This document shows, piece after piece, positions 42,791-63,004 of a stretch of 64,000 nt of DNA (its first letter is position 1; each line of letters begins with the position of its first letter). The position numbers and the translations under genes are program-made. The DNA lies in the sequence record MF360958.1. One strand, given 5' to 3'. The notes beneath the pieces are model-generated. The model saw nothing but the letters and a program-made list of their open reading frames with translations, did no database searches and was not told the origin of the DNA.

Positions 42791-43450
42791 ATGAGGTTGT
42801 ATATGGTTGATGTTATTAACAAACCAGTTTACGTTTGTGAATATTGTTCAAAAGAATATCTCAAAGAGAAAACATGTATTAATCATGAAAAGAAGTGTGG
42901 CAGTGAGAAAGCAAAAAATGATATTATTGCTTCTTTTCTCAAGGATAAAGATTATGTACGAAAGAATGCTAAAAATATTGAGCATTTAATCGATCTTATT
43001 AAAGAGCAAATCTATAACAAAACTGGTATTAATGTTGATGTTGATATTATCAATGTAAAATATTCTAAAATCATTCCTAATACGCATAGTTGTCCCATAG
43101 ATGGTGTTAGAAATTGGAAACAACAATCTGATAGACCAGTTGGTTATATTGGTTTCACAGGGCGTATTGCTCTCACAATTACTAATCGTGAACTAAAATA
43201 TTTGAAAGAAAATAAATCATTAAAGATGATGAATGACAATATTCTAAGTCATATTATAACAGATAAAAATGGAGTATTTTTCGAAGGGGTTAATACAGAG
43301 TCTGGAAGCGCTAATGATAAAATGGCTCAATATTATGTATGTCTTTTTCTGGATGACTTTCCTGAAATGAAAAAGATGTGGAAAAAATTGAAACTTGAAG
43401 CTGAAGATGATGATCATCTTCAATCATTGATTTGGTATAGATTGATGTGA
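42791..43450 (+). CDS. hypothetical protein with N-terminal zinc finger
   Basis: YVCEYCSKEY...CINHEKKC. Confidence 0.55.
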   Translation: MRLYMVDVINKPVYVCEYCSKEYLKEKTCINHEKKCGSEKAKNDIIASFLKDKDYVRKNAKNIEHLIDLIKEQIYNKTGINVDVDIINVKYSKIIPNTHSCPIDGVRNWKQQSDRPVGYIGFTGRIALTITNRELKYLKENKSLKMMNDNILSHIITDKNGVFFEGVNTESGSANDKMAQYYVCLFLDDFPEMKKMWKKLKLEAEDDDHLQSLIWYRLM

Positions 43451-43481
43451 TAAATATTGTTTAAAACGATAGGAAAATATT

Positions 43482-44012
43482 ATGAGAATAAAACAAATAA
43501 CAGAAAATACTGGCAGTGATTATGATTCTGAAAGCGATTATGATGTTGAAGGTGTAAAAATCACATCTGAAAAACTTAATGGTAAAATAGTACGTAGAGC
43601 AGGAATAATCCCATATATTATTGATAATGATGGAAATATTCATGTATATACAATGATCCCTAGCGATCCCGATTACGGCGGAACACAGCCTCAAATAGCT
43701 AAAGGAAAGATGCATAACAATTTAACTAGTGAACAAACAGCATGGAATGAAGGTGAAGAAGAATTAGGATTAATTAAAAGTAATACAAAAAACTTTGAAT
43801 TATTAAAAGTTTATCCATATAACCAAGATCATTCAGGATCAAATGATAATCTTGCAGTTTATATTGTCGAAGTTATTGATTCTGAAAAATGGAATGAACC
43901 TCATTATGAAACAGGTTGGTCTGGTTGGATTAATATTACTAATAATTTATCTAAAATACGAGATATTCAACAAAATATTTTCAAAGATTTACACTCTCAT
44001 ATAAAAAATTAA
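43482..44012 (+). CDS. Nudix hydrolase (late, MRIKQITE N-terminus)
   Basis: PQIAKGKMHNNLTSEQTAWNEGEEELG variant Nudix box; GATAAATA upstream. Confidence 0.75.
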   Translation: MRIKQITENTGSDYDSESDYDVEGVKITSEKLNGKIVRRAGIIPYIIDNDGNIHVYTMIPSDPDYGGTQPQIAKGKMHNNLTSEQTAWNEGEEELGLIKSNTKNFELLKVYPYNQDHSGSNDNLAVYIVEVIDSEKWNEPHYETGWSGWINITNNLSKIRDIQQNIFKDLHSHIKN

Positions 44013-44033
44013 ATTCACATTGAGGAAAATAAC

Positions 44034-44426
44034 ATGGAATCAAAACAAGTAATTGTAGTACGTAAAGATATTGAAATGCCTAAAGGTAAAATGGCTGCGC
44101 AAGTCAGTCATGCTTCATTGGGCTGTATTCTTAAAGTCATGAGACAATCTGAAGATACGTTTCATTTCGAAACAAAAGAAGATTGTGGTATTTCAAATTG
44201 GCTTAATGGAAGTTTTACTAAGATCACTCTATATTGCAATAATCTCGTTGATATGATGAATATTGATTTACAAGCAAGAAATGCAGGGTTGGTCACGTGC
44301 GTTATTGAAGACGAAGGAAGGACTGTATTTAATAATGAACCTACATATACATGTCTTGGTATTGGTCCTGATTTTGTTGATAATTTTGAAGGGATCACTG
44401 ATCATCTGAAAATGATTCGAAATTAG
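44034..44426 (+). CDS. pth2: peptidyl-tRNA hydrolase type 2
   Basis: KQVIVVRKDIEMPKGKMAAQVSHAS...IEDEGRTVF...TCLGIGP. Confidence 0.9.
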   Translation: MESKQVIVVRKDIEMPKGKMAAQVSHASLGCILKVMRQSEDTFHFETKEDCGISNWLNGSFTKITLYCNNLVDMMNIDLQARNAGLVTCVIEDEGRTVFNNEPTYTCLGIGPDFVDNFEGITDHLKMIRN

Positions 44427-47329: not shown

Positions 47330-48439
47330 ATGGAGATTGTCATGAGTAATAAAACGACCAAATATGATAAGCGTTGTGAAAATCTTAAAGAAAAGATGAG
47401 TGGTTTTGTAAATCCCATTATTGATTATCGCTTTGATCCATGGCGTGATCTCACACGTAGTGCTTTTGGTGGTATCATCCGTGATATGGTTGCATTTTTC
47501 GTTGCTGAAAACTATGGTGGAAATGTCAATTTCTATCGTGGTTATCATGTTCCTAGTAAATTTACTATTCAATGGTTTGATGAATTTCTCGAAGATCAAG
47601 TAGGTTATTCAACCATTAAAGATTTTTATTTCAGGAACATCGATACCTTTAAAAAGCAAGTCGAGGATATTCAAATCGATAATCCTGAATCCGAAAATGC
47701 GGTTGTTGTATATTCTCAAACATACAGAGGTTTCATTCGTTCTGATAATCATGGTATTATCACTATTGGTCCAGAAGAATATGCTACCAAGTTTGATTAC
47801 TTCATGAGTGAAGAACTTACAAAATATGCGATTGCAAAGTGCATTCTTCCAGAAGGTTACTATGATGATGAATATTCGATGAAAGATGATATGATCATCG
47901 TTAAGCCGAAGCGTTCTGAACTTTATAAGAAGTCAGAAACGTATCTTGATTTTGATGATTAATTACGGATGAACATGACAGAATCCATTACTATTGAAGC
48001 GAAAAATAAAAAACACCAATCCGATATCTTGGGATATTTCAACGATATCGGTGAGTGCTTTCCTCAATTCAATCATATGTTTGAGTGCTCGCTTGATTAT
48101 CGAAATCATCCGTATACGCCCAAAAAGCTATGTTATCATCCAGTACATATTTCATTTAATATCTGTGCTGATTATGAATTGGTTCGACTTCTTCATAATA
48201 GTGTAAAGTATGTATCTCAACAAAACGGCACTAGGCTCTATTACGATGAGGAAGAAATTGATTGGGTTTACCCTATTAGCACTGTTGGGCGCGATAAAAA
48301 TGATCTACATGTCGAGGTTTTAAAAATATCACCAACTATTAGTCTTGTAGAAAATAATGAAGTTATAGATGGAAATCACAGAGTACGACTTGCAAAAGAA
48401 AAAAGATTTAGAATCAATATATGCTTATGTAGTATATGA
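47330..48439 (+). CDS. two hypothetical proteins (47330..47962; 47969..48439 with ParB/Srx-like IDGNHR)
   Basis: ORF track; VIDGNHRV motif. Confidence 0.5.
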
Positions 48440-48534
48440 AAAGTATTTTTTTTTCACCATTTTTAGTATTTTTTTAACACTTGCATAAATATGATTACCG
48501 TGTTACGGTATTAAACACAATGAAGGAATTAACA

Positions 48535-48669
48535 ATGAATAGCAATACTATGAACAACAATGTAAACACTTCAATCAACGAAATGAATATTTCTGTTGAT
48601 CACAATATTGCTATGCATAATGATCATATTAATAATGATATTGATATGTCATGGAGGGTTTTGATCTGA
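48535..48669 (+). CDS. attenuator leader peptide 1 (44 aa; 12 Asn, 6 Ile, 5 Met, 4 Asp, 3 His)
   Basis: MNSNTMNNNVNTSINEMNISVDHNIAMHNDHINNDIDMSWRVLI*, with an AAGGA RBS. Confidence 0.8.
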   Translation: MNSNTMNNNVNTSINEMNISVDHNIAMHNDHINNDIDMSWRVLI

Positions 48670-48729
48670 ATTTTTGGTAAATGCAACCAAGAGTCAATAT
48701 CAAAACCCTTCCAAACGGAAGGGTTTTTT
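48653..48729 (+). promoter_or_regulatory. attenuator 1: antiterminator/terminator switch
   Basis: GGAGGGTTTTGAT (48653-65) pairs with ATCAAAACCCTTC (48699-711), 13 bp, competing with terminator AAAACCCTTCC-AAAC-GGAAGGGTTTTTT (48702-29). Confidence 0.85.
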
Positions 48730-48753
48730 AGTTTATAGAGATTAAAAATTATA

Positions 48754-48831
48754 GGAACTGTAACTCAACTGGTAGAGTACCGGCCTGTCTAGTCGGAAGT
48801 TTTGGGGGTTCGAATCCCCTCAGTTCCGCCA
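48754..48831 (+). tRNA. tRNA-Asp(GUC)
   Basis: GGAACTG/CAGTTCC acceptor, loop CTGTCTA, G73, CCA. Confidence 0.9.
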
Positions 48832-48842
48832 AACAATACAAT

Positions 48843-48918
48843 GGTACTCATAGCTTAGTGACTAAAGCACTCGGTTGTGACCCGAGTAGACGTAGGTTTG
48901 AATCCTACTGAGTACCCC
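48843..48918 (+). tRNA. tRNA-His(GUG)
   Basis: G-1:C73, GTACTCA/TGAGTAC, loop TTGTGAC; CCA incomplete (CCT). Confidence 0.85.
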
Positions 48919-48936
48919 TCTAAATACTTAAAATGT

Positions 48937-49013
48937 GGCAAGGTAGTTCAGTTGGCAAGAACGCATCACTCATAATGATGAGGTCGGGAGTTCAAATCTC
49001 CCCCTTGCCACCA
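48937..49013 (+). tRNA. tRNA-Met/Ile2(CAU)
   Basis: GGCAAGG/CCTTGCC, loop CTCATAA, ACCA. Confidence 0.9.
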
Positions 49014-49063
49014 ACAAACAAAAAAGATATAATATAGTCAATACAAATTGAGGTTGATTAAGT

Positions 49064-49504
49064 ATGAACGATTGGGTGACACATCAAACACATGATGAAC
49101 CAAAAGATCTAGCACCGGATCAAATTATTGAAACAACATGGCCTAAGAATTTTAAGCCAGAATTAAAAGGTGATAATAAAACACAATATATTTCAGTATT
49201 CCGTTTAATTTGGCTTCCGGGTATTGAATATCGTGTTGTAAAAGATAAAGACGGTATTGGTTATTGTAACCATGAAGGTCTTAAACAATCAACACAGTAT
49301 GTTGCAACACAACAATGTGTTATTGGTGGAGAGCGAGCTTTGCAATTTAGTTCAAAGCCCGAATATGTAAAACCGTCATTGATTGCTCCCTATAAATGGG
49401 ACAATGGAGAAAATAACGGGCGCGTTGATGCGCCTCAAAATAAAATCAAACCCGGAGATTGTAAAGATTCAATTCTCCGAGTTTGGTGGAGCGAAGAAGT
49501 TTAA
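49064..49504 (+). CDS. hypothetical protein
   Basis: 146-aa ORF with GAGG RBS inside the tRNA operon. Confidence 0.6.
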   Translation: MNDWVTHQTHDEPKDLAPDQIIETTWPKNFKPELKGDNKTQYISVFRLIWLPGIEYRVVKDKDGIGYCNHEGLKQSTQYVATQQCVIGGERALQFSSKPEYVKPSLIAPYKWDNGENNGRVDAPQNKIKPGDCKDSILRVWWSEEV

Positions 49505-49507
49505 TAC

Positions 49508-49584
<77 letters not shown>

Positions 49585-49607
49585 AATTAAAAATTATAGG
49601 AAAAATT

Positions 49608-49781
49608 ATGGTTTACAATAGAGAACAAGCTTACGAAGAACTTTATGATCCAGATAGTGAACAACGTTCTGATATGGCTCATGAGCTTATTGAGCACATG
49701 GAATCCATCAAGCGAGCATATAGAAGTGGTGATATGGATGAGCTTGAAGACCTCATTGAAGAATGGGGTGGAAATTCTTAA
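49608..49781 (+). CDS. small hypothetical protein (57 aa, not in the ORF track)
   Basis: MVYNREQAYEELYDPDSEQRSDMAHELIEH...WGGNS*, with AGGA RBS. Confidence 0.55.
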   Translation: MVYNREQAYEELYDPDSEQRSDMAHELIEHMESIKRAYRSGDMDELEDLIEEWGGNS

Positions 49782-50005
49782 CGGTTAAACTTATGAAAAT
49801 TAAACATATATGCATTTTTCATAAATGGAAAACATATACAGATCATTTACCAATTGTTTATAAACAATGTAAAAAATGTAATAGGATAAAAATAGTTTCT
49901 ATTACTCCTATGGGACATCGACCATACGATTTAAAAGTACATATAGGAAAATGATCGTTAACTGTTGACAAAGGATAAATAAAACGTTAAGATAATATAA
50001 ACAGT

Positions 50006-50081
50006 TGCAGGGTAGAGCAGTTGGTAGCTCATCGGGTTCATAACCCGAAGGTCGGCGGTTCGAGTCCGCCCCCTGCCTCCA
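50006..50081 (+). tRNA. initiator tRNA-fMet(CAU)
   Basis: 1:72 mismatch, three G-C pairs in the anticodon stem (TCGGG/CCCGA), loop TTCATAA, CCA. Confidence 0.9.
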
Positions 50082-50088
50082 AATTAAA

Positions 50089-50178
50089 GGATGTCGCTGT
50101 AGTGATAGTGTTCCGGGCACATGGGGACGACTACGCCGGTTGTAAGCCGGTCCTCCAAGGAATCCTAGGCATCCACCA
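50089..50178 (+). ncRNA. non-canonical tRNA-like RNA with GUA (Tyr) anticodon-like loop
   Basis: GGATGTC/GGCATCC+ACCA; GCCGG-TTGTAAG-CCGGT; no canonical T-arm. Confidence 0.5.
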
Positions 50179-50188
50179 TTTAAACAAT

Positions 50189-50275
50189 GGTCTGAATAGC
50201 GCGTAAGTCTTGCAATGGGTGATCCTCATTCTAGCGTCGAAAAGGTATCCGGGGAAGGGCCGGAAGGACAAGCCA
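50189..50275 (+). ncRNA. candidate structured RNA ending in GCCA
   Basis: GC-rich island; hairpins AATG...CATT and TCCGG/CCGGA; 3' CCA; sits at tRNA-like spacing in the operon. Confidence 0.4.
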
Positions 50276-50289
50276 AACACTAATAGAGG

Positions 50290-50505
50290 TTGTTTAAAAT
50301 GTCAAAATATTTTATTATTGAAAATAAAGTAAACAATGCATATTTTTCCCACTATAAATTTTCAGATAGTGGTGAAGAAAAAACAGAAGTTTTTGTGAAA
50401 GGTAAAACCCTTGCTCTAAAACTTGAGTATGATAAAGCTCAAAAACTTAGTGAAGAATTAAATCAAGTAGAAAATATTGATACACAGGTTGTGAACGCAC
50501 TTTAG
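50290..50505 (+). CDS. hypothetical protein
   Basis: 71-aa ORF with GAGG RBS. Confidence 0.55.
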   Translation: MFKMSKYFIIENKVNNAYFSHYKFSDSGEEKTEVFVKGKTLALKLEYDKAQKLSEELNQVENIDTQVVNAL

Positions 50506-50514
50506 CTAAGTGTA

Positions 50515-50589
50515 GTCAGCAGCTAGTTTAACTGGGTAGAACGTCCGCCATAGGTGGAAGATACAAGTTCGAATCTTGTACTGTTGACA
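50515..50589 (+). pseudogene. degenerate tRNA (shortened anticodon loop CATAG, no CCA)
   Basis: GTCAGCA/TGTTGAC acceptor, D-arm, TACAAG-TTCGAAT-CTTGTA T-arm; TCCGC/GTGGA stem with a 5-nt loop. Confidence 0.6.
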
Positions 50590-50728
50590 TTTTTAAAAAG
50601 CATAGATGGATCAGGGTTAAAATCCTTGAGTGGTAATGTGAGAAATCACATTCCGGCTGCGGTCGTGAGCCCAATACGCTCATACATTTTTGAAACTGTC
50701 TGTGCTTTTTAATTTTGAAAAGAATAAT

Positions 50729-50850
50729 TGGGTAGTAGCTCAGATGGTAGAAGCAGCGCGCTGTGGGCCTTATGGGTAATATCAGGTTCAACTCCTGAAA
50801 GGCCAAAAGTAACGCGCAGGTCGCAGGTTCGAGCCCTGCCTACCCAGCCA
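50729..50850 (+). tRNA. tRNA-Asn(GUU) with a 45-nt insertion (50765-50809) in the anticodon
   Basis: TGGGTAG/CTACCCA, U1-A72 and G73 (Asn-type), canonical D/T arms and CCA. Removing 50765-50809 gives GCGCG-CTGTTAA-CGCGC. Confidence 0.75.
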
Positions 50851-50853
50851 TAC

Positions 50854-50883
50854 AAAAAGCCACCTACATAGGTGGCTTTTTTA
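50854..50883 (+). terminator. terminator ending tRNA operon 1
   Basis: AAAAAGCCACCT-ACAT-AGGTGGCTTTTTT. Confidence 0.85.
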
Positions 50884-53765
50884 TTGCACACATTAGCCCA
50901 CGCCTGTATAATGTTATCTATGACTCCAAAGAAAAGACAGAGAAATTTACAGTTAGATAAAAGTTTCCGAATTGGGCTAACCGTTCCTTATGATTTCGTT
51001 GTCCAAGTATCATCAGCTCGCCATTATACAATGAAAGAATATTCTGAACTAATACATAATGAAAAACATTATCGAATTCAAAAACATATAGATAGATTAA
51101 AATTTAGATTATACCGTGAATTTAGTTTACTTTTTAAACAATTAAAACTCAATTATTATTGGTATGATGTTGATATTATCTATGGAGATGAAATATCTTC
51201 TATGAATAAATTGACACATCTTACAAATTTTAAATATGATTTTCACTATTTAATTACTTTTAAATTTTCTCAACATGATTTGAATCGTTTAAAATTAGTC
51301 CATCAAGATTTTTATGACGTACTTATTGATGACACTAGGGACGCTATAAAGTTTCAGGATATGTTTGGATATTTGATTAAAAATTAGAGTAAAATTATGA
51401 CAAAGTACAGAAAACATAACCATAACAGACATAATGAATTTAATGTATCAATAACTAATATAGGGTTCAATCAACGTATCGGTTATAATGAAGATGAAGT
51501 GTTTAAAGAAAACTTTTCATTTGGATTAGAATTTGCTAAAAATAAAAACAGAGAAATAGCTGAACGCTGTGAAAGACTTGTAAGATTTCAACTTTATAAA
51601 GAGTTTATCAAACGTTTACAAGACAATAATATTAAAAGGTATTGGTTTGATATTACTTCAAGACATTCATATATGACAACTTATCTTTATATGGATGATA
51701 ATGATTTTGTAACATTAACTATATTTATCACATTTCAGATAACATTAAAAATTAATCAACATGATACTAATCGTTTGAAGTTATCTGATCCTGAATTTTA
51801 TGATTTGTTATGGGAACAGAACAGAATTCGTAATACAATAACACAAGAGTATCCTTCTTTAGACGTTCTTATAGAAAATAGAAAAACAAAATCATGACCA
51901 ATAAAAGAAGAAACAGATTATATTTTGAAAATGAATTCAACATTTCTCTTTATCAATTGTATGATGTTGTACAGATTGATTCTAAAAAGAGTTATAAAAG
52001 TATAAAAGACATTAGACATCATAATGATAAAATTCTTTATGATGTGTTAAACGATGTAAAGAAAAATTTATATCGTAAAATGATTAAACGATTTAAAGAA
52101 TCTGGTTTAAAACATTATTGGATTGATATAACTATGAATGCCAGTGATCAAGGTATTCATGAAGAATTACAAACAAAGAACAAACATCACCAACAAGAAA
52201 TGCATATAGTAACGTTTGATTTTTTTTATATTATTCATTTTAGAATTTCTCAACAAGATATTAATCGGTTAAAAATAACAGATGAAGAATTTTTTGATAT
52301 GTTAAATGATGAAAATGTAGATTTGTTTGAAAAAATATTCTGTTACACTATATCTAATTGATAAGTGAATTTTTATGACTGAAAAAAGAAGAGTAAACGT
52401 TTTATATAATAAATCGCATCGTATTGATATTGACCCAATTGGTTTTTATATTTTTACGGATCATCTCAACGATGACTGCTTAACATATAGTGGTGTCAAA
52501 CAATATAATGATAATCTTCTTGATCGTGTCTATAAAAATGTGAAGCGAGTATGTTACCGATATTTTATTACTAAGTTTAGAGAGAATAATATAAAAACAT
52601 ATTGGATGAATGTAAGTATTAGTATTGTTTATAATGATGTTGAACGAGATAGTTATAACAGAAGTGGTATGTATCCATATATATTAGAAGCTCAAATATA
52701 TATTTTCACAACACAACATGATTTTAATCGTTTAAAATTAACGGACTATTCATTATGTAATATTCTTAACAATTTAGATACGGCTGAACTTAATGATAAA
52801 AGTATAGAATCAATAAAAATCGAGTTATAAACTATGACACATCAAAGAAAAACTGATCCTAATTTATCCAAAGAGTTTCTAATTAGACCATTACCGCTTA
52901 TATTTTATTACTATTATGCTGATAATAGTGTAGTAAATTATGAAAACTTAAAAGATGACATATTCAATACTGAGCGTATGGTTAAAAGAAAATGCTATCG
53001 ATATTTCATTTATAAATTTAAAGAAAATGGAATAAAATCATATTGGATGAATGTAAGTATTAATTCAACATGTCATAATCTTTCCAGTGATTTTATAGAT
53101 TCAATAGTAGATATTGGTACAATAAGTACAATAAGTGAGCGTAAAGGTATTATCTATGATTGCGAGTTAAACATCAGAATAACTGTTTTATTCTCACAAC
53201 ATGGACTTAATCGTTTAAAAATATGCAATAACCAGCTTCATGACATCATCAATAACAAACATAATTCTCATATTAATAAACTACTTAACGAATGGTTTAC
53301 AATAAGTAAGAGTCAATTATGACTGAGCACAGAAAGAATAATCTTCAGAAAACTAATAATTATAACTTGGAATTCTTAATAGTAGAAGATATTGTATTTT
53401 ATAATGAATCAAGATTATATTGGGGAGAAGATTATGAAAAAGTTGTTCAATCAAATAAGGATATGTTTGAGTCAATTGATCAACGTGTTAAAAACACAGT
53501 TTACAAACAGATAGGTAAATTATTTTTCAATAATATTAGAAAAAGCAATTATTGGTTTTATGTTTCGTTAGAGATTATAAAAGGTCCGTTATCAAATATA
53601 TATGATAATAATCCTAATATAATAGTACGATGTTATTTAGCATTTACAGTATATTTATACATTTCAGATCATGGTATGAAAAAATTAAAACTTATAGATC
53701 AAATTATAGGTAATATCATTGAAGATGAAAATGGTGATAGACTTGAATATATTTTAGGTTTTTAG
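50872..53765 (+). CDS. tandem array of six paralogous ~150-170-aa proteins (50872, 51397, 51894, 52375, 52834, 53319)
   Basis: All have an MTxxR(K/R) start (first member likely at 50920) and share K.(L/C)YR.F...F, YW.(D/N)(I/V) and a C-terminal (S/T/N)(Q/D)(H/Q)(D/G).(N/K)(R/K)LK(L/I). Confidence 0.8.
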
Positions 53766-55596: not shown

Positions 55597-55693
55597 AAAA
55601 ATTTACGGTTTTTAAAGTATTTTTTGAAAACTGTATAAATAAAATCAACAAGTCATTATTGACAAAAAACAATTAACGATTAGAATAATTATT

Positions 55694-55825
55694 ATGATTA
55701 ACGCAAGTACTACAAACATCGCTAAAAGTATGATCGGTAAAGCTGCCAAAGTTAGCTTCAAAGGTGGCTTTGTGTGGGCGTTTAGCTTTAAAAAAGCGAG
55801 CGGACAGCGAGGGTTTTTGGAATAG
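55694..55825 (+). CDS. attenuator leader peptide 2 (43 aa; 6 Lys, 6 Ala, 5 Ser-AGY, 5 Gly, 5 Phe, 2 Val, 1 Trp); not in the ORF track
   Basis: MINASTTNIAKSMIGKAAKVSFKGGFVWAFSFKKASGQRGFLE*; ATG lies 7 nt after the -10 of TTGACA-N16-TAGAAT (55659-86). Confidence 0.8.
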   Translation: MINASTTNIAKSMIGKAAKVSFKGGFVWAFSFKKASGQRGFLE

Positions 55826-55890
55826 TGAATGAAGTGTAAACCAGCATTCAAAATAATTCCAGAAACCCTTCCAAGTCGGAAGGGTTTTTT
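55809..55890 (+). promoter_or_regulatory. attenuator 2: antiterminator/terminator switch
   Basis: GAGGGTTTTTGGAAT (55809-23) pairs with ATTCCAGAAACCCTT (55856-70), competing with AAACCCTTCC-AAGTC-GGAAGGGTTTTTT (55863-90). Confidence 0.85.
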
Positions 55891-55922
55891 AGTTTAGGAA
55901 TAATAAAATTTAGAGAATATTT

Positions 55923-55998
55923 GGGGATATAACTCAACTAGTAGAGTACATGGCTTTTAACCATGCTGTTCAGGGTGCAAGTCCTTGTATCCCCACCA
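55923..55998 (+). tRNA. tRNA-Lys(UUU)
   Basis: GGGGATA/TATCCCC, loop CTTTTAA, ACCA. Confidence 0.9.
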
Positions 55999-56004
55999 AA
56001 TTTA

Positions 56005-56083
56005 GGAAGGATAGCTCTAATTTGCGTAGAGCAGAGGATTGAAAATTCTCGTGTTGGGAGTTCGAATCTCTCTCTCCTTCCAC
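56005..56083 (+). tRNA. tRNA-Phe(GAA)
   Basis: GGAAGGA/TCCTTCC, loop TTGAAAA, ACCA. Confidence 0.9.
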
Positions 56084-56263
56084 CAAATTTAAAAGGATTA
56101 AAAATATGAGTAATAAAGAAAATATCGCATATAGTGTAGAAAATGAAGGTCTGAAAAGAAGATGAAAAATGGGATAATGGTGAGCTAAGAAATGATGAAC
56201 GCTTTGTGAAAGTTGCTGATAAACAAACCGAAGAAGCTCTTGAACAAGCATTGAAAAAATAAA

Positions 56264-56340
56264 GCCGGATTAGCTTAATTGGTAAAGCGGCGGACTCCAA
56301 ACCCGCGTCTAACGTGGTTCGAAACCATGATCCGGTGCCA
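56264..56340 (+). tRNA. tRNA-Trp(CCA)
   Basis: GCCGGAT/ATCCGGT, loop CTCCAAA, G73, CCA. Confidence 0.9.
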
Positions 56341-56361
56341 AATTTATAAAGGTGATTAACA

Positions 56362-56679
56362 TTGAAACGACTTTATCATATGTATCGAAATTTAAATTCA
56401 AAGTGTTGATCCGTTAAACATAGAGGAAAAGTTATAGGTCATCATGATTCTATTGTTTTGAAAAATTGCGAATTTAGAGTTAGTGAAAAAGGTCGTCAAA
56501 GAGTTTTAAAAGAAAAAGTTAAAAATGTTCATGCTTATATTGCAGCACAAACACATGAAGAATTAGATGATGCCATTGATAAATGTAACAAAGTAGAGCT
56601 TACTTATAATCCATATAAATATTCAACATTTGTGATTAAGGAAACAGGAGAACCAATTTATCATTGTGATCCATATTAG
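56362..56679 (+). pseudogene. phage hypothetical gene with in-frame TGA (56407-09)
   Basis: KRLYHMYRNLNSKC*SVKHRGKVIGH...CEFRVSEKGRQRVLKEKVKNVHAYI; same frame on both sides of the TGA. Confidence 0.6.
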
Positions 56680-56751
56680 CTAAAGATGATGGTAAAATCT
56701 ATAAAATTCGTTATTGACATAAAACAAATTATTTATTATAATATTTAAATA

Positions 56752-58422
56752 GTGATCAAGAGGAATTTAGTAATGTATAAAATTATGACCAAAGACGAAC
56801 GTTATGTGATTATTGTGGAAGAAAAAAGTGCAGTAAATGAATACTATGTTTTTGAGACTCAAGATCTCATCGTAGAAGACAATATGGAAAAAGAAGCATC
56901 AGATTTTTATAATAAAATGCTGAAAGAAGATCAGAAACCATCTATTTATATGAGTGTTAAATGGGATGGTTGTGCAAATATGGATGCGAAAGAAGATAAT
57001 GTGTTGATTCATTTTTGTGAACAATCGCATATCGATTCATTTTATGGTATGCTGTCAACATGTTACAAAGATGCTGAAAAGCGTTTTGATTTTAACAATA
57101 TGTTCAACTAATAGTGGAGTAAATAGTGATGAAAGTTAAAGCGATTGATACAGAAACAAATCGTAGTGATCGTCCCGGAAAGCCTGATGGTATTACGGAA
57201 GGACACGTTTACGAAGTTGTTCAAATCAAATCTTTTTTCCATAATAATCGTAAGATGCAGATGGATCAGTACCGGATTTATAATGATTATGGAAAACTGA
57301 CTAATCATTCACAATACCGTTTTGAAGTTGTTGATGATTCAAAACCTGAACCGTTGGTTAAGTCTTTCAACAGGCTTACTAGTGATGTAAGGGTTGAAAA
57401 TCGAGAACTCAAAGAGAAAAATGAAAAGCTGGAAAATTTGGTTGAGTACTATAGAAAACTTTTAAGTGTTGAATAAAAAGGTTGATTTTTAATAGTAATT
57501 ATTGTTATAATAAACATTGTTGAGATATAGGAGATTTAGTATGAATATGAATGGTCTATTTAAATTGGTTGCTATTACAATGACTTTCGTATTTGTAGTT
57601 GGTTGTAAGTATGATGCTCATGCCTTTTCGGCTGAAGTTATTGAAATTGGTGATTGTGTGTATGATGGCCCTTATACATGTCGGGTTAAAGTCAAGCATG
57701 AACAAACGAAACTTGATGATGAACATAAGACAGACGATGACATTATGTATGTTGAAGTTTGGGGTACGGTCATGAAAGGGCAAACCATCTATCGTCTGTG
57801 CTGGTTTGAATCATCTGAAAAAGAAAAAAGAATGTGTTTTGTTCCATTCAGAACATCCGTACCAAATGGTTATGAACTTCGCGATTAGGAGATTTAAAAT
57901 GAGTAATAAATCGAAATATATTGAAGATCTTGAAAGCATTCGTGATCAACTTCGTCAAGAGCGTGAAGAACATTTTAAAAACATGTCTGATCCACGTAAA
58001 GGAAAAGATAAAGAATGGACTGAAGTTGAAAAGTCCAATCAACGTTATCATGATGCTGTAGAACAATCATATGCAGAGTATTATAAAAGATATGGCGATC
58101 CTGATAACGAACAACGGTAAAATATAAGATAATTAAAGGTGGTTAGCTCAGTTGGGAGAGCGCTGGTTTTACATACCGGAGGCCACAGGTTCAAACCCTG
58201 TACCACCTACCAGTATATGTATGAAAAATAATGATTGATCTTATTAAAAGCTTAATCAAAGATTGGAAGAATAAAAGATTGTATAGTGATCCAAGAAAAC
58301 TTCACTATGCACAGTTAAGAGAACATAATAAAGAAAGGGGTGTTGAGCATCCTTGTGATTGGGACTATACTGTTCCATCATTAGATGATATGATTAGAGA
58401 GTATCGTGACAAAGGTTATTAA
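56752..58422 (+). CDS. hypothetical proteins interleaved with tRNAs (56752, 57126, 57517, ~57900..58120, 58231)
   Basis: ORF track with GGAG RBSs. Confidence 0.55.
58137..58212 (+). tRNA. tRNA-Val(UAC)
   Basis: AGGTGGT/ACCACCT, loop TTTACAT, ACCA. Confidence 0.9.
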
Positions 58423-58558
58423 AGATTATGTTTAATACGAAAATAAAAGAAAATTTTTCATTTGCTTTTCTTTGCACGGTATTGATTATTTTTATAGGTT
58501 TTCCTTAACAGCATATGGTTTATGTTTTCTTTATTAGGAATTAAACAAAACAATTTTT

Positions 58559-58650
58559 AGTGGGGTGGTCGAGCGGTCTAAGACGCTGGATTGCTAATCC
58601 AGTGATCCGTTGTTACGGGTCCGAGGGTTCGAATCCCTCTCCCACTGCCA
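58559..58650 (+). tRNA. tRNA-Ser(GCU)
   Basis: AGTGGGG/TCCCACT, loop TTGCTAA, long variable arm, GCCA. Confidence 0.9.
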
Positions 58651-59174
58651 GTTTAAAATTAAGGCAAAATAGTATGGAACAGCGTTTTAAAAGTTTTGGG
58701 TACAAATTAAAAATAAAACTTAAACAATATCGTTGTAAAACATTATTGGGAACAGAGTTTTCCAGACAATAATCGAGATTTTTACTGTGTTAAATGTGGT
58801 AAAGATTATTGTTTACCTTTTTAAAAATTAAGTAAAGACAAACTAATATATGTTTAAAAATCAAAATATTATATTTCAAACAAAAAATAATATTTCTGTT
58901 AAAGAAATAAAAGAGATATTAAATACGTTTCGAAACGAAAATAAAACTTCATTAGTAATGGAGTATAAATATAAAAATCTTATATGGTATGTAAATATAA
59001 CCGGAAATTTTGAAAAGAAATCTTATAATGACTTTATATCAAATTTAGAAAATGTTACAGAAACTATTCTAAAAATTAATTAAAGCTTTAATAGCGGCTC
59101 ATGATGGTCTTTGGTTTCGCCCGGTATCCATTTCCCACGCCCCTATTACAGTCAGGGACCGGGTGTAAACAATA

Positions 59175-59260
59175 TGGCTCAGTGGCGATGCAGTTGTATC
59201 CTTAATGCGCGAAGGGTATGATCAAGTGGTTGAGGGTTCGATTCCTTCCTGAGCCTTCCA
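59175..59260 (+). ncRNA. aberrant tRNA-like RNA (UGC in an 8-nt loop; Ala-like?)
   Basis: GGCTCAG/CTGAGCC acceptor, GAGGG-TTCGATT-CCTTC T-arm, CCA; long central stem TATCCTT/AAGGGTA with loop AATGCGCG; no G3:U70. Confidence 0.5.
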
Positions 59261-59266
59261 AACAAT

Positions 59267-59342
59267 GCGGGATTGGTGTTTAATGGTAGCATGTCGGACT
59301 TCCAATTCGAAGGTCGGGGTTCGAACCCCCGATCCCGCACCA
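59267..59342 (+). tRNA. tRNA-Gly(UCC)
   Basis: GCGGGAT/ATCCCGC, loop CTTCCAA, ACCA. Confidence 0.9.
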
Positions 59343-59962: not shown

Positions 59963-60671
59963 ATGAGTCATAAAGAAATCAAAATTTGTTTTATAGTATT
60001 ATGCATACTGGTTTTGATGTGGGGTGGTGGAATGATATTAACAGCGTTTCATTTCTCTACATTTTATTCTGGATTACTAATCATATTTTCAGTTTTTGGT
60101 ATGTGGACATTGGGTGAATATACCTATCGTAGAGTAAGGATTAGGAATAGAAATGATTAAACAACGTAAACATAATTATGTTCATAGTATTCTCAATCAT
60201 GATGAAATTTATAGTATCATTGATCATATTGAAAACATGAATTATAAGACAGAAGAACAAGCATTGTGTTATATTCATGATCAGGTTAAAAAGAACTATC
60301 TTTCTAAGAAGAAATTTAAGTTGTTACTCACGTGGCATTTTGAAAATTAATTTTCAATTTTTATAAATAGTATTAAGAAAATTAATTGAATAATATGGAG
60401 TTAAAAAATAATGACTATTAGAAAACATTTGGATATGATCAATAATATCGAGTCCGAACAACTTAATGAATCTTTCAATAAAGGCGATACTGTTAAAGTA
60501 AAAGATGATGTTAAAAATCCTCAGATCAAAAAGTTTGCAGGAAAACAGGCAAAGGTTCTTAGTACTGAAGATGATGGTAAAACCATTCATGCAAAGGTTA
60601 AAGGTGCTAAACATGGTTCTATGGAATTTAAATCCAGCGAACTAGAAAAATTTGACGAAGAAAATTCTTGA
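59963..60671 (+). CDS. three small hypothetical proteins (59963 membrane, 60153, 60411 late SH3/KOW-like)
   Basis: ORF track; TATAAATA upstream of 60411. Confidence 0.5.
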
Positions 60672-60740
60672 CAATTGAGCATTTTTTCAGTAACATTATA
60701 AATAACATAAACAAAGCAATTAAACATTAAGGTAATTATT

Positions 60741-60854
60741 ATGAACGCTCTAACACGTACATTCACATTAACAATCACAACACGCTCGTCAGAGCGCACG
60801 AGTGAAGTACGCTCCACTGAACGCGAAACAGTAGGAGAACGGAAGGGTGTTTGA
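60741..60854 (+). CDS. attenuator leader peptide 3 (37 aa; 9 Thr, 6 Arg-CGN, 5 Glu, 4 Ser); not in the ORF track
   Basis: MNALTRTFTLTITTRSSERTSEVRSTERETVGERKGV*; AAGG RBS; promoter TTGACA-N17-TAACAT (60668-96) followed by TATAAATA. Confidence 0.85.
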   Translation: MNALTRTFTLTITTRSSERTSEVRSTERETVGERKGV

Positions 60855-60912
60855 ATAATTCAAATATAAGAATGTTCAACAATAAAAACCCTTCCAAATG
60901 GAAGGGTTTTTT
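60841..60912 (+). promoter_or_regulatory. attenuator 3: antiterminator/terminator switch
   Basis: GGAAGGGTGTTT (60841-52) pairs with AAAAACCCTTCC (60884-95), competing with AAAACCCTTCC-AAAT-GGAAGGGTTTTTT. Confidence 0.85.
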
Positions 60913-60935
60913 AGTTTGTGGTTTTAGAAAATTTA

Positions 60936-61026
60936 GGAGAGTTGGCAGAGCGGACGATTGCAGCGGTCTTGAAAACCGCCGAGGGTTTGCAGCCCTCCGT
61001 GGGTTCGAATCCCACACTCTCCGCCA
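60936..61026 (+). tRNA. tRNA-Ser(UGA)
   Basis: GGAGAGT/ACTCTCC, loop CTTGAAA, long variable arm, GCCA. Confidence 0.95.
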
Positions 61027-61033
61027 GAACATT

Positions 61034-61108
61034 GTCCTGTTCGTCTAATGGTTAGGACTCTACCCTTTCACGGTAGCAACAGGGGTTCGAATCCCCTACG
61101 GGACGCCA
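61034..61108 (+). tRNA. tRNA-Glu(UUC)
   Basis: GTCCTGT/ACGGGAC, loop CTTTCAC, GCCA. Confidence 0.95.
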
Positions 61109-61115
61109 ATACAAT

Positions 61116-61187
61116 GCCTCGGTAGTTTAATCGGTAAAACAAATGACTTGTAATCATTAGTCGGTGGATCGTAACCGCCCCGAGGCT
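61116..61187 (+). tRNA. tRNA-Thr(UGU), no encoded CCA
   Basis: GCCTCGG/CCGAGGC, loop CTTGTAA, variant T-loop ATCGTAA. Confidence 0.8.
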
Positions 61188-61219: not shown

Positions 61220-61921
61220 ATGAGGTATTTTATGATTAAAAATTATACAAAAAAAGAATTAGAATCAATATTATTAAAATATGGCATGGATAATAATACT
61301 TTTATTGTGAAAAGGGAATTTCCTAATCATATAGATTATATACCATCATATAATTCATGTTGGAGAAATGGAGTAGAAATTAGAAAAGTTAATAAAATTA
61401 TAGATTATAAATTTTACAAAACAAGTCCAAATAAATGTACTAATTGTAGAAAAAATTTAATTTATAAGAAAAGATATAATAAATTTTGTAATAGGTATTG
61501 TTGGATTATATATAATGCTAGATATAATTGTGGTAAAAATTGTTTAAATTGTTCTAAAAGATTTACATCGAAAAGTTCTAATTCAAAATATTGTTCTATT
61601 GAATGTTCAGCAGAGAAAAGATATAAAGATACTATTAATAAATGGTTAAATGGTGAATTAAAGGGGCATACTGGTAAAGCTCTGCAAATTAAACAATTTG
61701 TGAGAAAATATTTATATCAAATAAGAGGAACAAAATGTAGTGAATGTGGATGGGATGAAAAGCATCCAAGAGATAATAGACCTTTAACACAATTTCATCA
61801 TATTGATGGGGATGCATCTAATACAACACCATCAAATCTTAAAATATTATGTCCTAATTGTCATTCAAAAACTGATAGTTATCTTTCAAGAAATAAAAAC
61901 AGTTGTCGTGATAGAAAATAG
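61220..61921 (+). CDS. HNH homing endonuclease (likely start 61232)
   Basis: CxxC repeats (CTNC, FCNRYC, CLNC, YCSIEC) and RGTKCSECG...QFHHIDGD..N....NLKILCPNCHSKT; late CATAAATA upstream. Confidence 0.9.
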   Translation: MRYFMIKNYTKKELESILLKYGMDNNTFIVKREFPNHIDYIPSYNSCWRNGVEIRKVNKIIDYKFYKTSPNKCTNCRKNLIYKKRYNKFCNRYCWIIYNARYNCGKNCLNCSKRFTSKSSNSKYCSIECSAEKRYKDTINKWLNGELKGHTGKALQIKQFVRKYLYQIRGTKCSECGWDEKHPRDNRPLTQFHHIDGDASNTTPSNLKILCPNCHSKTDSYLSRNKNSCRDRK

Positions 61922-61923
61922 TT

Positions 61924-61957
61924 TTAGTCGGCGGATCGAAACCGCCCCGAGGCTCCA
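61924..61957 (+). repeat. duplicated 3' half of tRNA-Thr, with CCA
   Basis: TTAGTCGGCGGATCGAAACCGCCCCGAGGCTCCA versus 61157-87 TTAGTCGGTGGATCGTAACCGCCCCGAGGCT (31 bp, 2 mismatches). Confidence 0.9.
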
Positions 61958-61963
61958 AATAAT

Positions 61964-62012
61964 TCCCCGGTAGCTCAATTGAATAGAGCAACGGTCTACG
62001 AAATCGTAGGTT
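61964..62012 (+). pseudogene. 3'-truncated tRNA-Arg(ACG)
   Basis: TCCCCGG, D-arm, ACGGT-CTACGAA-ATCGT, AGGTT, then AT-rich sequence; no T-arm or acceptor 3' strand seen. Confidence 0.75.
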
Positions 62013-62041
62013 ATATTACCAACAAAATAATAAATATTATT

Positions 62042-63004
62042 ATGAAATACTATACTGTTTATAAAATAAAAAATAAAATCAATGATAAAATTTATATAGG
62101 TTGTCATAAGACTGAAAATCTCGATGATAACTATATGGGATCTGGTATATATTTACGAAGGGCCATAGACAAATATGGTATAGATAATTTTGAAAAACGC
62201 ATTATGTTTGTATATGACAATCCATATGATATGTTTTCAAAGGAGGCAGAAATAGTTACCGAGAGCTTTGTAGAAAGAAAAGATAATTATAATTTAAAAA
62301 TTGGAGGCATGGGTGGATTTGATTATATAAACAGAAATAAATTAGGATTAATTGGATTTTGGAATTATTGGAATAATTTAACCAGTGAACAATTAGAACG
62401 ACATATTCAATTATCAAGACAGGGAGGATTTAAAACATTAAAAGATAGAACAGGCTTGTTTTCAAAAAAATCTATTGAAAATAGAATTTCATCTATTAGA
62501 AAAAATAATGAAAATTGGACTTTTGGCGGAATGAAGCATTCCAAAAAAAGTAAAGAAAAAATGTCTAATAGTGCTAAAAAACGTTTGAAAGATCCTATGA
62601 AACATTCTCAATATGGCACTATGTGGATCTATTCATTAGATGAAAAACGTGCTAAAAAAATAAAAAGAACAGATAATATACCTAATAATTGTATTGTCGG
62701 ACGTAAACCTAAAAAACAAAATAACCATAATAAAAATCCTAAATGTAAAACATGTAGTAATACAACTAGCACATTTAGATCGAGGTATTGTGAAAATTGT
62801 AAAAAACTTAGAAATTATCAAAGAAAAGGATATAATAAAATAGATTTTATATCTAGAAAGCATAATATAATTGAAGGAAGTGTATCAAAAAATAAAGATT
62901 TTATTAAAGAATGTATTTCTAACAATATTCCAAAAAATAATATTTTAAAATTTTTAAATTGTAATAATTCAGGAGGAAATTATAATATTATTAAAAATTT
63001 ATAA
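62042..63004 (+). CDS. GIY-YIG homing endonuclease (Seg-like) with NUMOD3-like motif
   Basis: YTVYKIKNKINDKIYIGCHKTENLDDNYMGSG; MKHSKKSKEKMS; TAAATA upstream. Confidence 0.9.
   Translation: MKYYTVYKIKNKINDKIYIGCHKTENLDDNYMGSGIYLRRAIDKYGIDNFEKRIMFVYDNPYDMFSKEAEIVTESFVERKDNYNLKIGGMGGFDYINRNKLGLIGFWNYWNNLTSEQLERHIQLSRQGGFKTLKDRTGLFSKKSIENRISSIRKNNENWTFGGMKHSKKSKEKMSNSAKKRLKDPMKHSQYGTMWIYSLDEKRAKKIKRTDNIPNNCIVGRKPKKQNNHNKNPKCKTCSNTTSTFRSRYCENCKKLRNYQRKGYNKIDFISRKHNIIEGSVSKNKDFIKECISNNIPKNNILKFLNCNNSGGNYNIIKNL

Follow-up and report, generated by a model that had tools for sequence, protein, structure and literature searches.

Leader-peptide attenuation is best known from enterobacterial operons such as those headed by thrL and ilvL (also trpL, hisL, leuL and pheL), in which a short translated leader carries regulatory codons and the ribosome sets the choice between a terminator and an antiterminator. 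The thr and ilv leaders sense several amino acids jointly. In Escherichia coli pheM–pheST and in leaders of synthetase genes in Deinococcus deserti, stalling at the codons of an amino acid controls a component of its translation; the D. deserti leaders, found before cysS and other genes, are predicted and leaderless (PMC4007540). T-box elements likewise sense the status of a specific transfer RNA (tRNA), choose between a terminator and an antiterminator, and act on translation-related genes. The tRNA clusters of T4, T5, KVP40-like phages and Eneladusvirus, in which small open reading frames (ORFs), homing endonucleases and tRNA-like RNAs are interspersed, are generally regarded as compensating for mismatched codon usage or for the loss of host tRNAs, and phage tRNAs in general are usually seen as constitutive codon-bias supplements or as spares against tRNA-cleaving defences. 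To our knowledge, next to nothing has been described about how phage-encoded tRNAs are regulated. The subject here is a stretch of 64,000 nucleotides (nt) from MF360958.1, hereafter the window, which belongs to Salicola phage SCTP-2. Judged from its sequence and from modelled folding, SCTP-2 very probably gates four of its tRNA clusters by ribosome-mediated (leader-peptide) transcription attenuators.

SCTP-2 is a T4-related jumbo myovirus with a 440-kb genome of 30.0% G+C; its source in the GenBank record is an Italian saltern. A window coordinate equals the record coordinate minus 248000 (48400-50900 is record 296400-298900, at 100% identity), and positions below are those of the window unless marked as record positions. 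The genome holds 24-27 tRNA genes, 0 of which are annotated in the GenBank record, and all except two lie within record 296.7-331.1 kb. The region has the make-up of a phage tRNA gene cluster, with tandem tRNAs and with HNH genes, GIY-YIG genes and tRNA-like elements between them. An original prediction, made from the letters alone, had read a short ORF before the first tRNA operon as the leader peptide of an attenuator matched to the Asn, Met, Ile, Asp and His tRNAs downstream. This codon-matched reading generalises, and three paralogous units with other amino-acid sets are present. The first unit, unit A, and its operon (48484-50879) are composed as follows, with tRNA calls by ARAGORN and Rfam unless stated otherwise.

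48484..48491, + strand: CATAAATA block, a possible promoter element (alignment of the four units)
48523..48528, + strand: Shine–Dalgarno sequence AAGGAA, 6 nt 5' of the ATG, read from the sequence
48535..48669, + strand: leader ORF A (gp335), 44 codons and TGA
48653..48671, + strand: antiterminator 5' strand (RNAfold), comprising the last 5 codons, the stop and 2 nt more
48693..48711, + strand: antiterminator 3' strand, overlapping the terminator 5' arm
48702..48733, + strand: intrinsic terminator AAAACCCTTCC-AAAC-GGAAGGGTTTT and U-tract, with the hairpin at 48702-48727
48754..48831, + strand: tRNA-Asp(GUC)
48844..48918, + strand: tRNA-His(GUG)
48937..49013, + strand: tRNA-Met(CAU), elongator-type or Ile2-type
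49508..49584, + strand: tRNA-Ile(GAU)
50006..50081, + strand: tRNA-Met(CAU), initiator-like, with a GGG/CCC anticodon stem
50517..50588, + strand: odd tRNA-like gene, called 'Tyr(AUA)' by ARAGORN, Rfam tRNA 40 bits
50729..50850, + strand: tRNA-Asn(GUU) with a 45-nt insert in the anticodon loop (ARAGORN -i; Rfam tRNA 46 bits)
50856..50879, + strand: terminator closing operon A (terminator scan)

The leader A protein, MNSNTMNNNVNTSINEMNISVDHNIAMHNDHINNDIDMSWRVLI, contains N12, I6, M5, D4 and H3, or 30 of its 44 residues, the count on which the original prediction had rested. Codons were matched to anticodons by standard wobble rules, against a background taken from 314 long ORFs and an empirical null of 3081 short ORFs with an ATG start, taken from every frame of the genome. 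By this measure, 29 of the 43 non-start codons of leader A are read by cluster A tRNAs (background 0.272, binomial P = 4.6e-8), and 3 of the 3081 short ORFs reach that fraction, leader A possibly among them. Because it stands out against the background and in both the binomial and the short-ORF statistics, the match is real and not a by-product of AT-richness. It holds for the five residues jointly and, taken singly, for N, M and H, each clearly enriched. The proposed 13-bp (base-pair) antiterminator (48653-65 with 48699-711) was recovered exactly by RNAfold, where it extends to 17 bp (48653-71 with 48693-711). The terminator is a perfect 11-bp hairpin that ends ~25 nt 5' of tRNA-Asp. A strong terminator also closes the operon, as claimed, although at 50856-50879 and not at 50854.

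Several features of this operon deserve a remark of their own. A perfect hairpin, TACCG-TGTTA-CGGTA (48496-48510), lies just 5' of the leader A Shine–Dalgarno sequence, is absent from the other three units and could serve as an operator or a 5' stabiliser. The initiator-like call for the tRNA-Met at 50006-50081 follows what we take to be the pattern of E. coli tRNA-fMet. The anticodon loop of the tRNA-like gene at 50517-50588, CCAUAGG with C at position 33, is non-canonical; the gene lacks an encoded CCA and has no counterpart codons in leader A. The insert in tRNA-Asn is far below the size of a group I intron.

The architecture of unit A recurs in units B and C of the window and in unit D, which lies outside it. 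The terminator scan had first pointed to a hairpin at 60884 that is almost the same as that of unit A. The terminator core CCCTTCC-N4/5-GGAAGGG is kept in all four and occurs 3 times in the window and 4 times in the 50-kb tRNA region, with 0 expected by shuffling. Each terminator sits 14-26 nt 5' of the first tRNA of a multi-tRNA cluster, a gap with no space for a promoter, and ~30-40 nt 3' of a short ORF. The stems are 11 bp with 5-6 G-C pairs, are followed by U6-7 and reach -15.6 to -18.0 kcal/mol in the terminator-scan fold. Within 24 kb of the tRNA region, strong terminators on the + strand are confined to the four attenuators and to the sites where operons A and D end, and the lone tRNAs (Cys, the third Met, Leu(CAA) and Leu(UAA)) have plain promoters without a leader–terminator unit. 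The ORFs have start codons and ribosome-binding sites, with AAGGAA in A, AAGG in C and D, and a degenerate site or leaderless start in B. Leaders A, B and C are annotated as 'hypothetical protein' (gp335, gp351 and gp364), and leader D carries no annotation.

In each unit the last 4-6 codons and the stop are a near-copy of the terminator 3' arm (GGAGGG/GGAAGGG...), able to pair with the 5' arm, and the leader tails SWRVLI (A), SGQRGFLE (B), GERKGV (C) and NGGKGC (D) thus encode RNA structure. Unit D has GCCC/GGGC in both terminator arms and a matching, compensatory GGAAGGGC in the ORF-end copy, and units A and B carry unit-specific complementary extensions (GAU/AUC and UUGGAAU/AUUCCAG) that pair in the antiterminator only. 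The sole upstream element common to the four units is CATAAATA in A and TATAAATA in B, C and D. Because TATAAATA is not over-represented across the SCTP-2 genome, a promoter role for it can only be presumed; with its conservation in the four units, it is at best a candidate T4-late-type promoter.

Unit B and its operon (55634-59342) supply Lys, Phe and Trp tRNAs and, with no strong terminator intervening, Val, Ser and Gly tRNAs further on.

55634..55686, + strand: upstream region, with TATAAATA at 55634-41 and a sigma-70-like TTGACA-16-TAGAAT at 55659-86
55694..55825, + strand: leader ORF B (gp351), 43 codons, MINASTTNIAKSMIGKAAKVSFKGGFVWAFSFKKASGQRGFLE
55809..55826, + strand: antiterminator 5' strand, the ORF end and stop (RNAfold)
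55850..55870, + strand: antiterminator 3' strand (folding)
55862..55894, + strand: terminator GAAACCCTTCC-AAGTC-GGAAGGGTTT and U-tract (motif search, terminator scan)
55923..55998, + strand: tRNA-Lys(UUU) (ARAGORN)
56004..56081, + strand: tRNA-Phe(GAA) (ARAGORN)
56264..56340, + strand: tRNA-Trp(CCA) (ARAGORN)
58137..58212, + strand: tRNA-Val(UAC) (ARAGORN), with no strong terminator between it and unit B
58559..58650, + strand: tRNA-Ser(GCU) (ARAGORN)
59267..59342, + strand: tRNA-Gly(UCC) (ARAGORN)

Leader B is rich in K, F, A, S and G and has one W. The Lys, Phe and Trp tRNAs read 12 of its 42 codons (P = 7e-3); counting also the Val, Ser(GCU) and Gly tRNAs that share the terminator-bounded operon raises this to 20 of 42 (P = 5.6e-5). 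Transcription from the sigma-70-like site would give a nearly leaderless messenger RNA.

Unit C precedes Ser, Glu and Thr tRNAs and the remains of an Arg tRNA.

60668..60704, + strand: promoter region, TTGACA-17-TAACAT and then TATAAATA
60741..60854, + strand: leader ORF C (gp364), 37 codons, MNALTRTFTLTITTRSSERTSEVRSTERETVGERKGV, with Shine–Dalgarno AAGG at 60729-32
60841..60854, + strand: antiterminator 5' strand GGAAGGGUGUUUGA, the ORF end including the stop
60876..60895, + strand: antiterminator 3' strand (folding)
60885..60916, + strand: terminator AAAACCCTTCC-AAAT-GGAAGGGTTTT and U-tract (terminator scan, motif search)
60936..61026, + strand: tRNA-Ser(UGA) (ARAGORN)
61034..61108, + strand: tRNA-Glu(UUC) (ARAGORN)
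61116..61187, + strand: tRNA-Thr(UGU) (ARAGORN)
61964..62012, + strand: tRNA-Arg(ACG) 5' half, truncated at the GIY-YIG endonuclease gene gp366

Leader C is rich in T, R, E and S, and 15 of its 36 codons are read by the Ser(UGA), Glu and Thr tRNAs (P = 9e-6). Its Arg codons are CGY in 5 of 6 cases, and CGC makes up 9% of background Arg codons; they seem to remember the since-disrupted tRNA-Arg(ACG) of the cluster. The surviving half has a canonical anticodon arm, ACGGT-CTACGAA-ATCGT, and matched annotated phage tRNA-Arg genes in BLAST, but some of the top matches are annotated tRNA-Trp; no 3' half was found in the SCTP-2 genome. The cluster bears marks of homing-endonuclease damage over 61220-63004, where the HNH gene gp365 follows right after tRNA-Thr, and a duplicate 3' half of tRNA-Thr ending in CCA (61926-61957) lies between gp365 and the tRNA-Arg half.

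Unit D was found through the terminator motif alone, at record 316321, before a cluster of Leu(UAG), Pro, Leu(GAG), Tyr(GUA) and Gln tRNAs. Richness in L, P, Y and Q was predicted for its leader before the ORF was read.

Record 316197-316283: leader ORF D, 28 codons, MRTNTTVNQYQLQQLPLVLYPYNGGKGC, with Shine–Dalgarno AAGG
Record 316349: U-tract of the unit D terminator

The ORF contains QYQLQQLPLVLYPY, and 12 of its 27 codons are read by tRNAs of its own cluster (P = 1.2e-4). Between units C and D, identity is 89% over the 90 nt preceding the ATG, 81-84% in the terminator and beyond it, and only 51% in the ORF bodies, a contrast that suggests duplication of the module followed by retuning of the leader. 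The terminator closing operon D (record 317618-317643, AAAGCCCTCTCAATTGAGAGGGCTTTTT) is an attenuator-terminator variant whose changes are compensated; a single family of terminators was seemingly reused across the tRNA region.

Each leader draws on its own cluster and avoids the others, with backgrounds of 0.12-0.27 for the own-cluster fractions.

Leader A: own cluster 29/43; each other cluster 0-3
Leader B: own cluster 12/42 (20/42 with Val, Ser(GCU) and Gly); each other cluster 1-6
Leader C: own cluster 15/36; each other cluster 1-2 (6 against the six-tRNA operon B)
Leader D: own cluster 12/27; each other cluster 1-3

Codons of other clusters are depleted (off-diagonal total 32 against 80 expected), and the true assignment of leaders to clusters is the best of 24 permutations, at 1.82 against 1.22 for the runner-up. 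Empirical P values against the short ORFs are 1e-3 (A), 4.5e-3 (B), 1e-3 (C) and 4.9e-3 (D). Synonymous choice within the leaders follows the local anticodons. Leader D uses CTN for Leu in 4 of 4 cases (background 49%), and the Leu tRNAs that read UUR lie 87 kb away; ATA is never used among the six Ile codons of leader A; Thr is ACA or ACG in 8 of 9 cases in leader C; and Ser is AGY in 5 of 5 cases in leader B and UCN in 3 of 4 in leader C (strict wobble lets Ser(UGA) read 2 of the 4). An a-priori strict test of synonymous codons gave 21 of 25 against 12.8 expected (P = 5e-4).

Folding bears on the other half of the mechanism. Transcripts were folded up to the terminator loop, the stage before the terminator 3' arm is made, and in RNAfold the ORF end pairs with the terminator 5' arm in 4 of 4 units. 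The antiterminator domains reach -25.9 (A), -24.8 (B), -16.9 (C) and -27.8 (D) kcal/mol, and the terminators -16.2, -16.6, -16.5 and -18.9 kcal/mol, respectively. A ribosome was then modelled as a 30-nt footprint shifted along each ORF. The 5' arm has a sequestration probability of 0.7-1.0 as long as the A site has not passed codon 35 in A, 34 in B, 29 in C or 20 in D; once the A site lies within the last 7-9 codons or at the stop, the value drops to about 0.1 or less and the terminator is free to form. The switch is sharp and depends on ribosome position in all four units. In unit A the antiterminator 5' strand is masked, and the terminator arm freed, with the A site in codons 37-45, which upholds the earlier proposal that a ribosome at the stop codon would hide the antiterminator. 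Nearly all cognate codons fall in the upstream zone where a stall would matter (A 25/34, B 16/33, C 13/28, D 11/19). Without a ribosome, all four units fold into the antiterminator at the co-transcriptional stage; in the equilibrium fold the antiterminator wins in A and B and the terminator in C and D. No 1:2 pause or anti-antiterminator hairpin of the trp type is evident in the four units, and hairpins inside the leader ORFs could act as pause sites.

We infer that the leaders are translated, that the two structures compete kinetically and that a physiological signal is read through the ribosome. Fast translation of a leader would bring the ribosome onto the ORF end or stop while the polymerase makes the terminator; with the ribosome over the antiterminator strand, the terminator would form and the tRNA genes would stay off. 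A ribosome that stalls earlier would let the antiterminator form and the polymerase continue into the tRNA genes, and with no ribosome at all the default would be read-through. The stall sites would be codons short of charged tRNA, mostly those read by tRNAs of the same cluster. Each cluster would then keep itself in balance by negative feedback, as a homeostat that applies OR logic to 3-6 amino acids, switched on by a shortage of decoding capacity for its own codons and off by ample supply. Such a shortage might come from host tRNA loss or from a host that is probably far more GC-rich than the 30% G+C phage, and the likely purpose would be to supply decoders of AT-rich codons in a host believed to be GC-rich or to replace tRNAs lost in infection. 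The SCTP-2 host is presumably GC-rich. Another Salicola phage has 56% G+C (PMC6518143).

A more specific and tentative proposal, which we hold to be possible though rather less than an even chance, is that the units are codon-resolved sensors of host tRNA loss, forming a counter-defence or takeover device. Each cluster would remain largely silent until the matching host tRNAs were depleted, whether by host anticodon nucleases, by phage-induced decay of host tRNAs or by host mismatch, and the missing set would then be replaced. The suggestion of the original prediction that a vulnerability shared by the queuosine (GUN) family of tRNAs is being sensed is not supported. Leader A has no Tyr codon, and the canonical tRNA-Tyr(GUA) and Tyr codons occur together in unit D; the Met and Ile tRNAs are not queuosine tRNAs, which also counts against it. 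Since the design is equally found with Lys/Phe/Trp, Ser/Glu/Thr and Leu/Pro/Tyr/Gln, an explanation specific to one tRNA family is not required. A peptidyl-tRNA-hydrolase-like (Pth-like) protein, gp326, is encoded just upstream of the tRNA region, and SCTP-2 has genes for two RNA ligases, one of them resembling T4 gp63, for a GreA-like factor and for an RpoH-like sigma factor. These genes bear on tRNA repair and on the control of transcription elongation and termination.

44034-44426: Pth-like gp326
Record 42899-44110 and 381633-382742: RNA ligases
Record 169793-170257: GreA-like gene
Record 32800-33648: RpoH-like gene

The two RNA ligases and the Pth-like protein are compatible with a conflict over tRNAs, without proving such a conflict.

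Other explanations keep the hardware and change the signal. The sensor might read amino-acid starvation, as in biosynthetic operons, with tRNA output rising when charging falls; a stalled ribosome cannot tell a missing tRNA from an uncharged one, as is established for attenuators of the trp and his type. This seems unlikely, because extra tRNA gives no relief from starvation and the feedback would be purposeless, the regulated genes are the tRNAs themselves, and the isoacceptor-specific codons (CTN and not TTR for Leu; AGY versus UCN for Ser) point to tRNA species. Quite improbable, too, is a non-specific signal, general translation capacity or transcription–translation coupling, to which the leader codons would be irrelevant. 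Any ribosome delay yields read-through in the folding model, and non-cognate codons are present as well (Ala in B; Ser, Thr and Val in A), yet four cluster-matched leader compositions, the off-diagonal depletion (32 versus 80) with the synonymous choice, and the divergence of the C and D ORF bodies beside flanks that are 81-89% identical would all be left unexplained.

The product might act in trans, as leader peptide or as a terminated ~200-nt leader RNA comparable to rnTrpL/peTrpL. For Sinorhizobium, functions in trans have been documented both for leader peptides and for small RNAs derived from attenuators, which gives the idea its precedent (PMC6614838, PMC7298713). Apart from the structure-encoding tail the SCTP-2 peptides have no sequence in common, their composition is of low complexity and follows the tRNA sets, and no target is evident; a trans role, which is very unlikely, would in any case supplement the cis mechanism and not supplant it. 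That ordinary small phage genes and ordinary terminators merely chance to precede tRNAs has a very low probability. AT-rich genomes do abound in Asn, Ile, Lys and Asp, and three of the ORFs are annotated merely as hypothetical proteins, but coincidence has to face the combined statistics at four sites, the blind prediction for unit D and the alternative pairing in 4 of 4 units, and the promoterless gap of 14-26 nt after a strong terminator would otherwise silence the clusters.

Gating of the clusters by leader-peptide attenuators has points that weigh against it; the most serious are that no relatives were found, that leader B fits only modestly and that C and D need kinetic trapping. Because the terminator wins at equilibrium in those two units, read-through there requires such trapping. 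Leader B fits worst, at P = 7e-3 and an empirical P of 0.06 on Lys, Phe and Trp alone; its top-enriched residue is Ala (6 codons), which has no matching tRNA gene, and its Shine–Dalgarno sequence is degenerate. A hidden tRNA-Ala that would account for the six codons was searched for and not found, and they may be required for RNA structure inside the ORF. In leader A, Asp and Ile, part of the match originally claimed, lie near the level of the AT-rich proteome and are not singly above it. No promoter was identified for unit A apart from the possible CATAAATA block. Sigma-70-like sites within operon A (49005-33 and 49965-93) are barely commoner than in shuffles, and through them the distal tRNAs, including the most-sensed, Asn, could bypass the attenuator. 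The function of both the tRNA-Asn with its 45-nt insert and the truncated tRNA-Arg is uncertain. The comparative evidence consists of four paralogues within one genome.

None of the collections searched yielded a homologous unit. With 48400-50900 as the query, blastn against 50,697 phage records matched only tRNA segments, and scans with the terminator motif (IMG/VR, metagenome contigs and bacterial genomes) returned unrelated terminators only, none beside a leader and tRNA; only one motif match, in Mycetocola, adjoins a tRNA, and it is an ordinary terminator between tRNA genes. In T5, phi-pp2, pEa_SNUABM_44, AP1 and fHe-Yen9-04, neither strict nor relaxed scans of the tRNA regions found an ORF–terminator–tRNA unit with cognate-codon enrichment (best P 0.008-0.24 per locus among 3-27 candidates each), and the same scans place the four SCTP-2 leaders first. 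The nearest relatives by TerL, 43-52% identical, are PA5oct, Atu_ph07 and one 218-kb IMG/VR contig, and PA5oct has no tRNA in its first 50 kb. No homologues of gp336, gp341 or the Pth-like gp326 were found in 5.8 billion proteins or IMG/VR. Two supposed precedents were set aside: an attenuator before E. coli tRNA-Phe genes was not borne out at pheV, which has a promoter only and no leader, and attenuator-like ORFs in the T5 tRNA region did not emerge from the scan. Full-text literature searches found no report of leader-peptide control of tRNA genes.

The tRNA region holds further features. Six tandem paralogous ORFs, gp340-345 (148-171 aa), occupy 50872-53765 between operons A and B. GC-rich islands lie between tRNA genes at 50088-50290, 50590-50700 and 59090-59260. 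Within them, 59176-59256 has an acceptor stem and T arm without a D arm (Rfam tRNA 26 bits), and 50088-50178 ends in ACCA and includes an anticodon-like arm with GUA. The islands resemble stable, tRNA-like RNAs of the kind annotated for the tRNA region of T5, and their folding z-scores are without significance. A possible extra tRNA-Arg(UCU) at record 331403-331483, with the canonical anticodon arm CTGGC-CTTCTAA-GCCAG, was missed by ARAGORN and has a weak tRNA-Sec-like match in Rfam (31.5 bits). ARAGORN -i made insert-bearing calls at record 317318-317472 (a 74-nt insert, 'Gly acc') and 320118-320248, and short intervening sequences are possible in several SCTP-2 tRNA genes.

If attenuation by these leaders is true, the phage gauges the speed at which codons are decoded by translating ribosomes and transcribes only the matching tRNA cluster. 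Leader-peptide attenuation, known from amino-acid metabolism in cells, would then also act on the tRNA pool, and in a virus. The near-identical flanks and unrelated leader bodies of C and D would amount to a natural experiment on how easily such a sensor is reprogrammed, and compact codon-specific sensors would be of use in synthetic biology. The units also offer a concrete route to asking which host tRNAs turn limiting in infection. Should the proposal of host tRNA loss prove true, this would be the first known virus-encoded measure of decoding capacity, codon by codon, with a transcriptional response, a natural 'ribosome speedometer' that is modular and retunable.

Set against the known systems, the SCTP-2 units differ from T-boxes in the sensor itself. 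In a T-box the RNA itself binds uncharged tRNA, by means of a specifier codon plus the T-box sequence and without a ribosome, and the SCTP-2 sensor is a translated ORF; no T-box was found among 4227 Rfam models (the tRNA region at E<=1 and the whole window at gathering thresholds). In the same searches Thr_leader (RF00506) scored 33.4 bits on unit D and Phe_leader (RF01859) 29.6-31.8 bits on units A, C and D, below the 55-bit gathering thresholds, which suggests a weak resemblance and no sequence homology. The synthetase leaders govern one protein and one amino acid, whereas the SCTP-2 units govern RNA genes, several amino acids per unit and four units in parallel. In contrast to the enterobacterial leaders, those of SCTP-2 are long, at 28-44 codons, and have their codons for 3-6 amino acids scattered along them; they target tRNAs and not enzymes, the tRNA itself would feed back, and the setting is viral. 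The default would be read-through, as A and B fold into the antiterminator without a ribosome, the opposite of trp super-attenuation. The system is best filed as classical attenuation in its hardware, with its novelty in the tRNA-gene target, the viral setting and the fourfold, retuned modular form.

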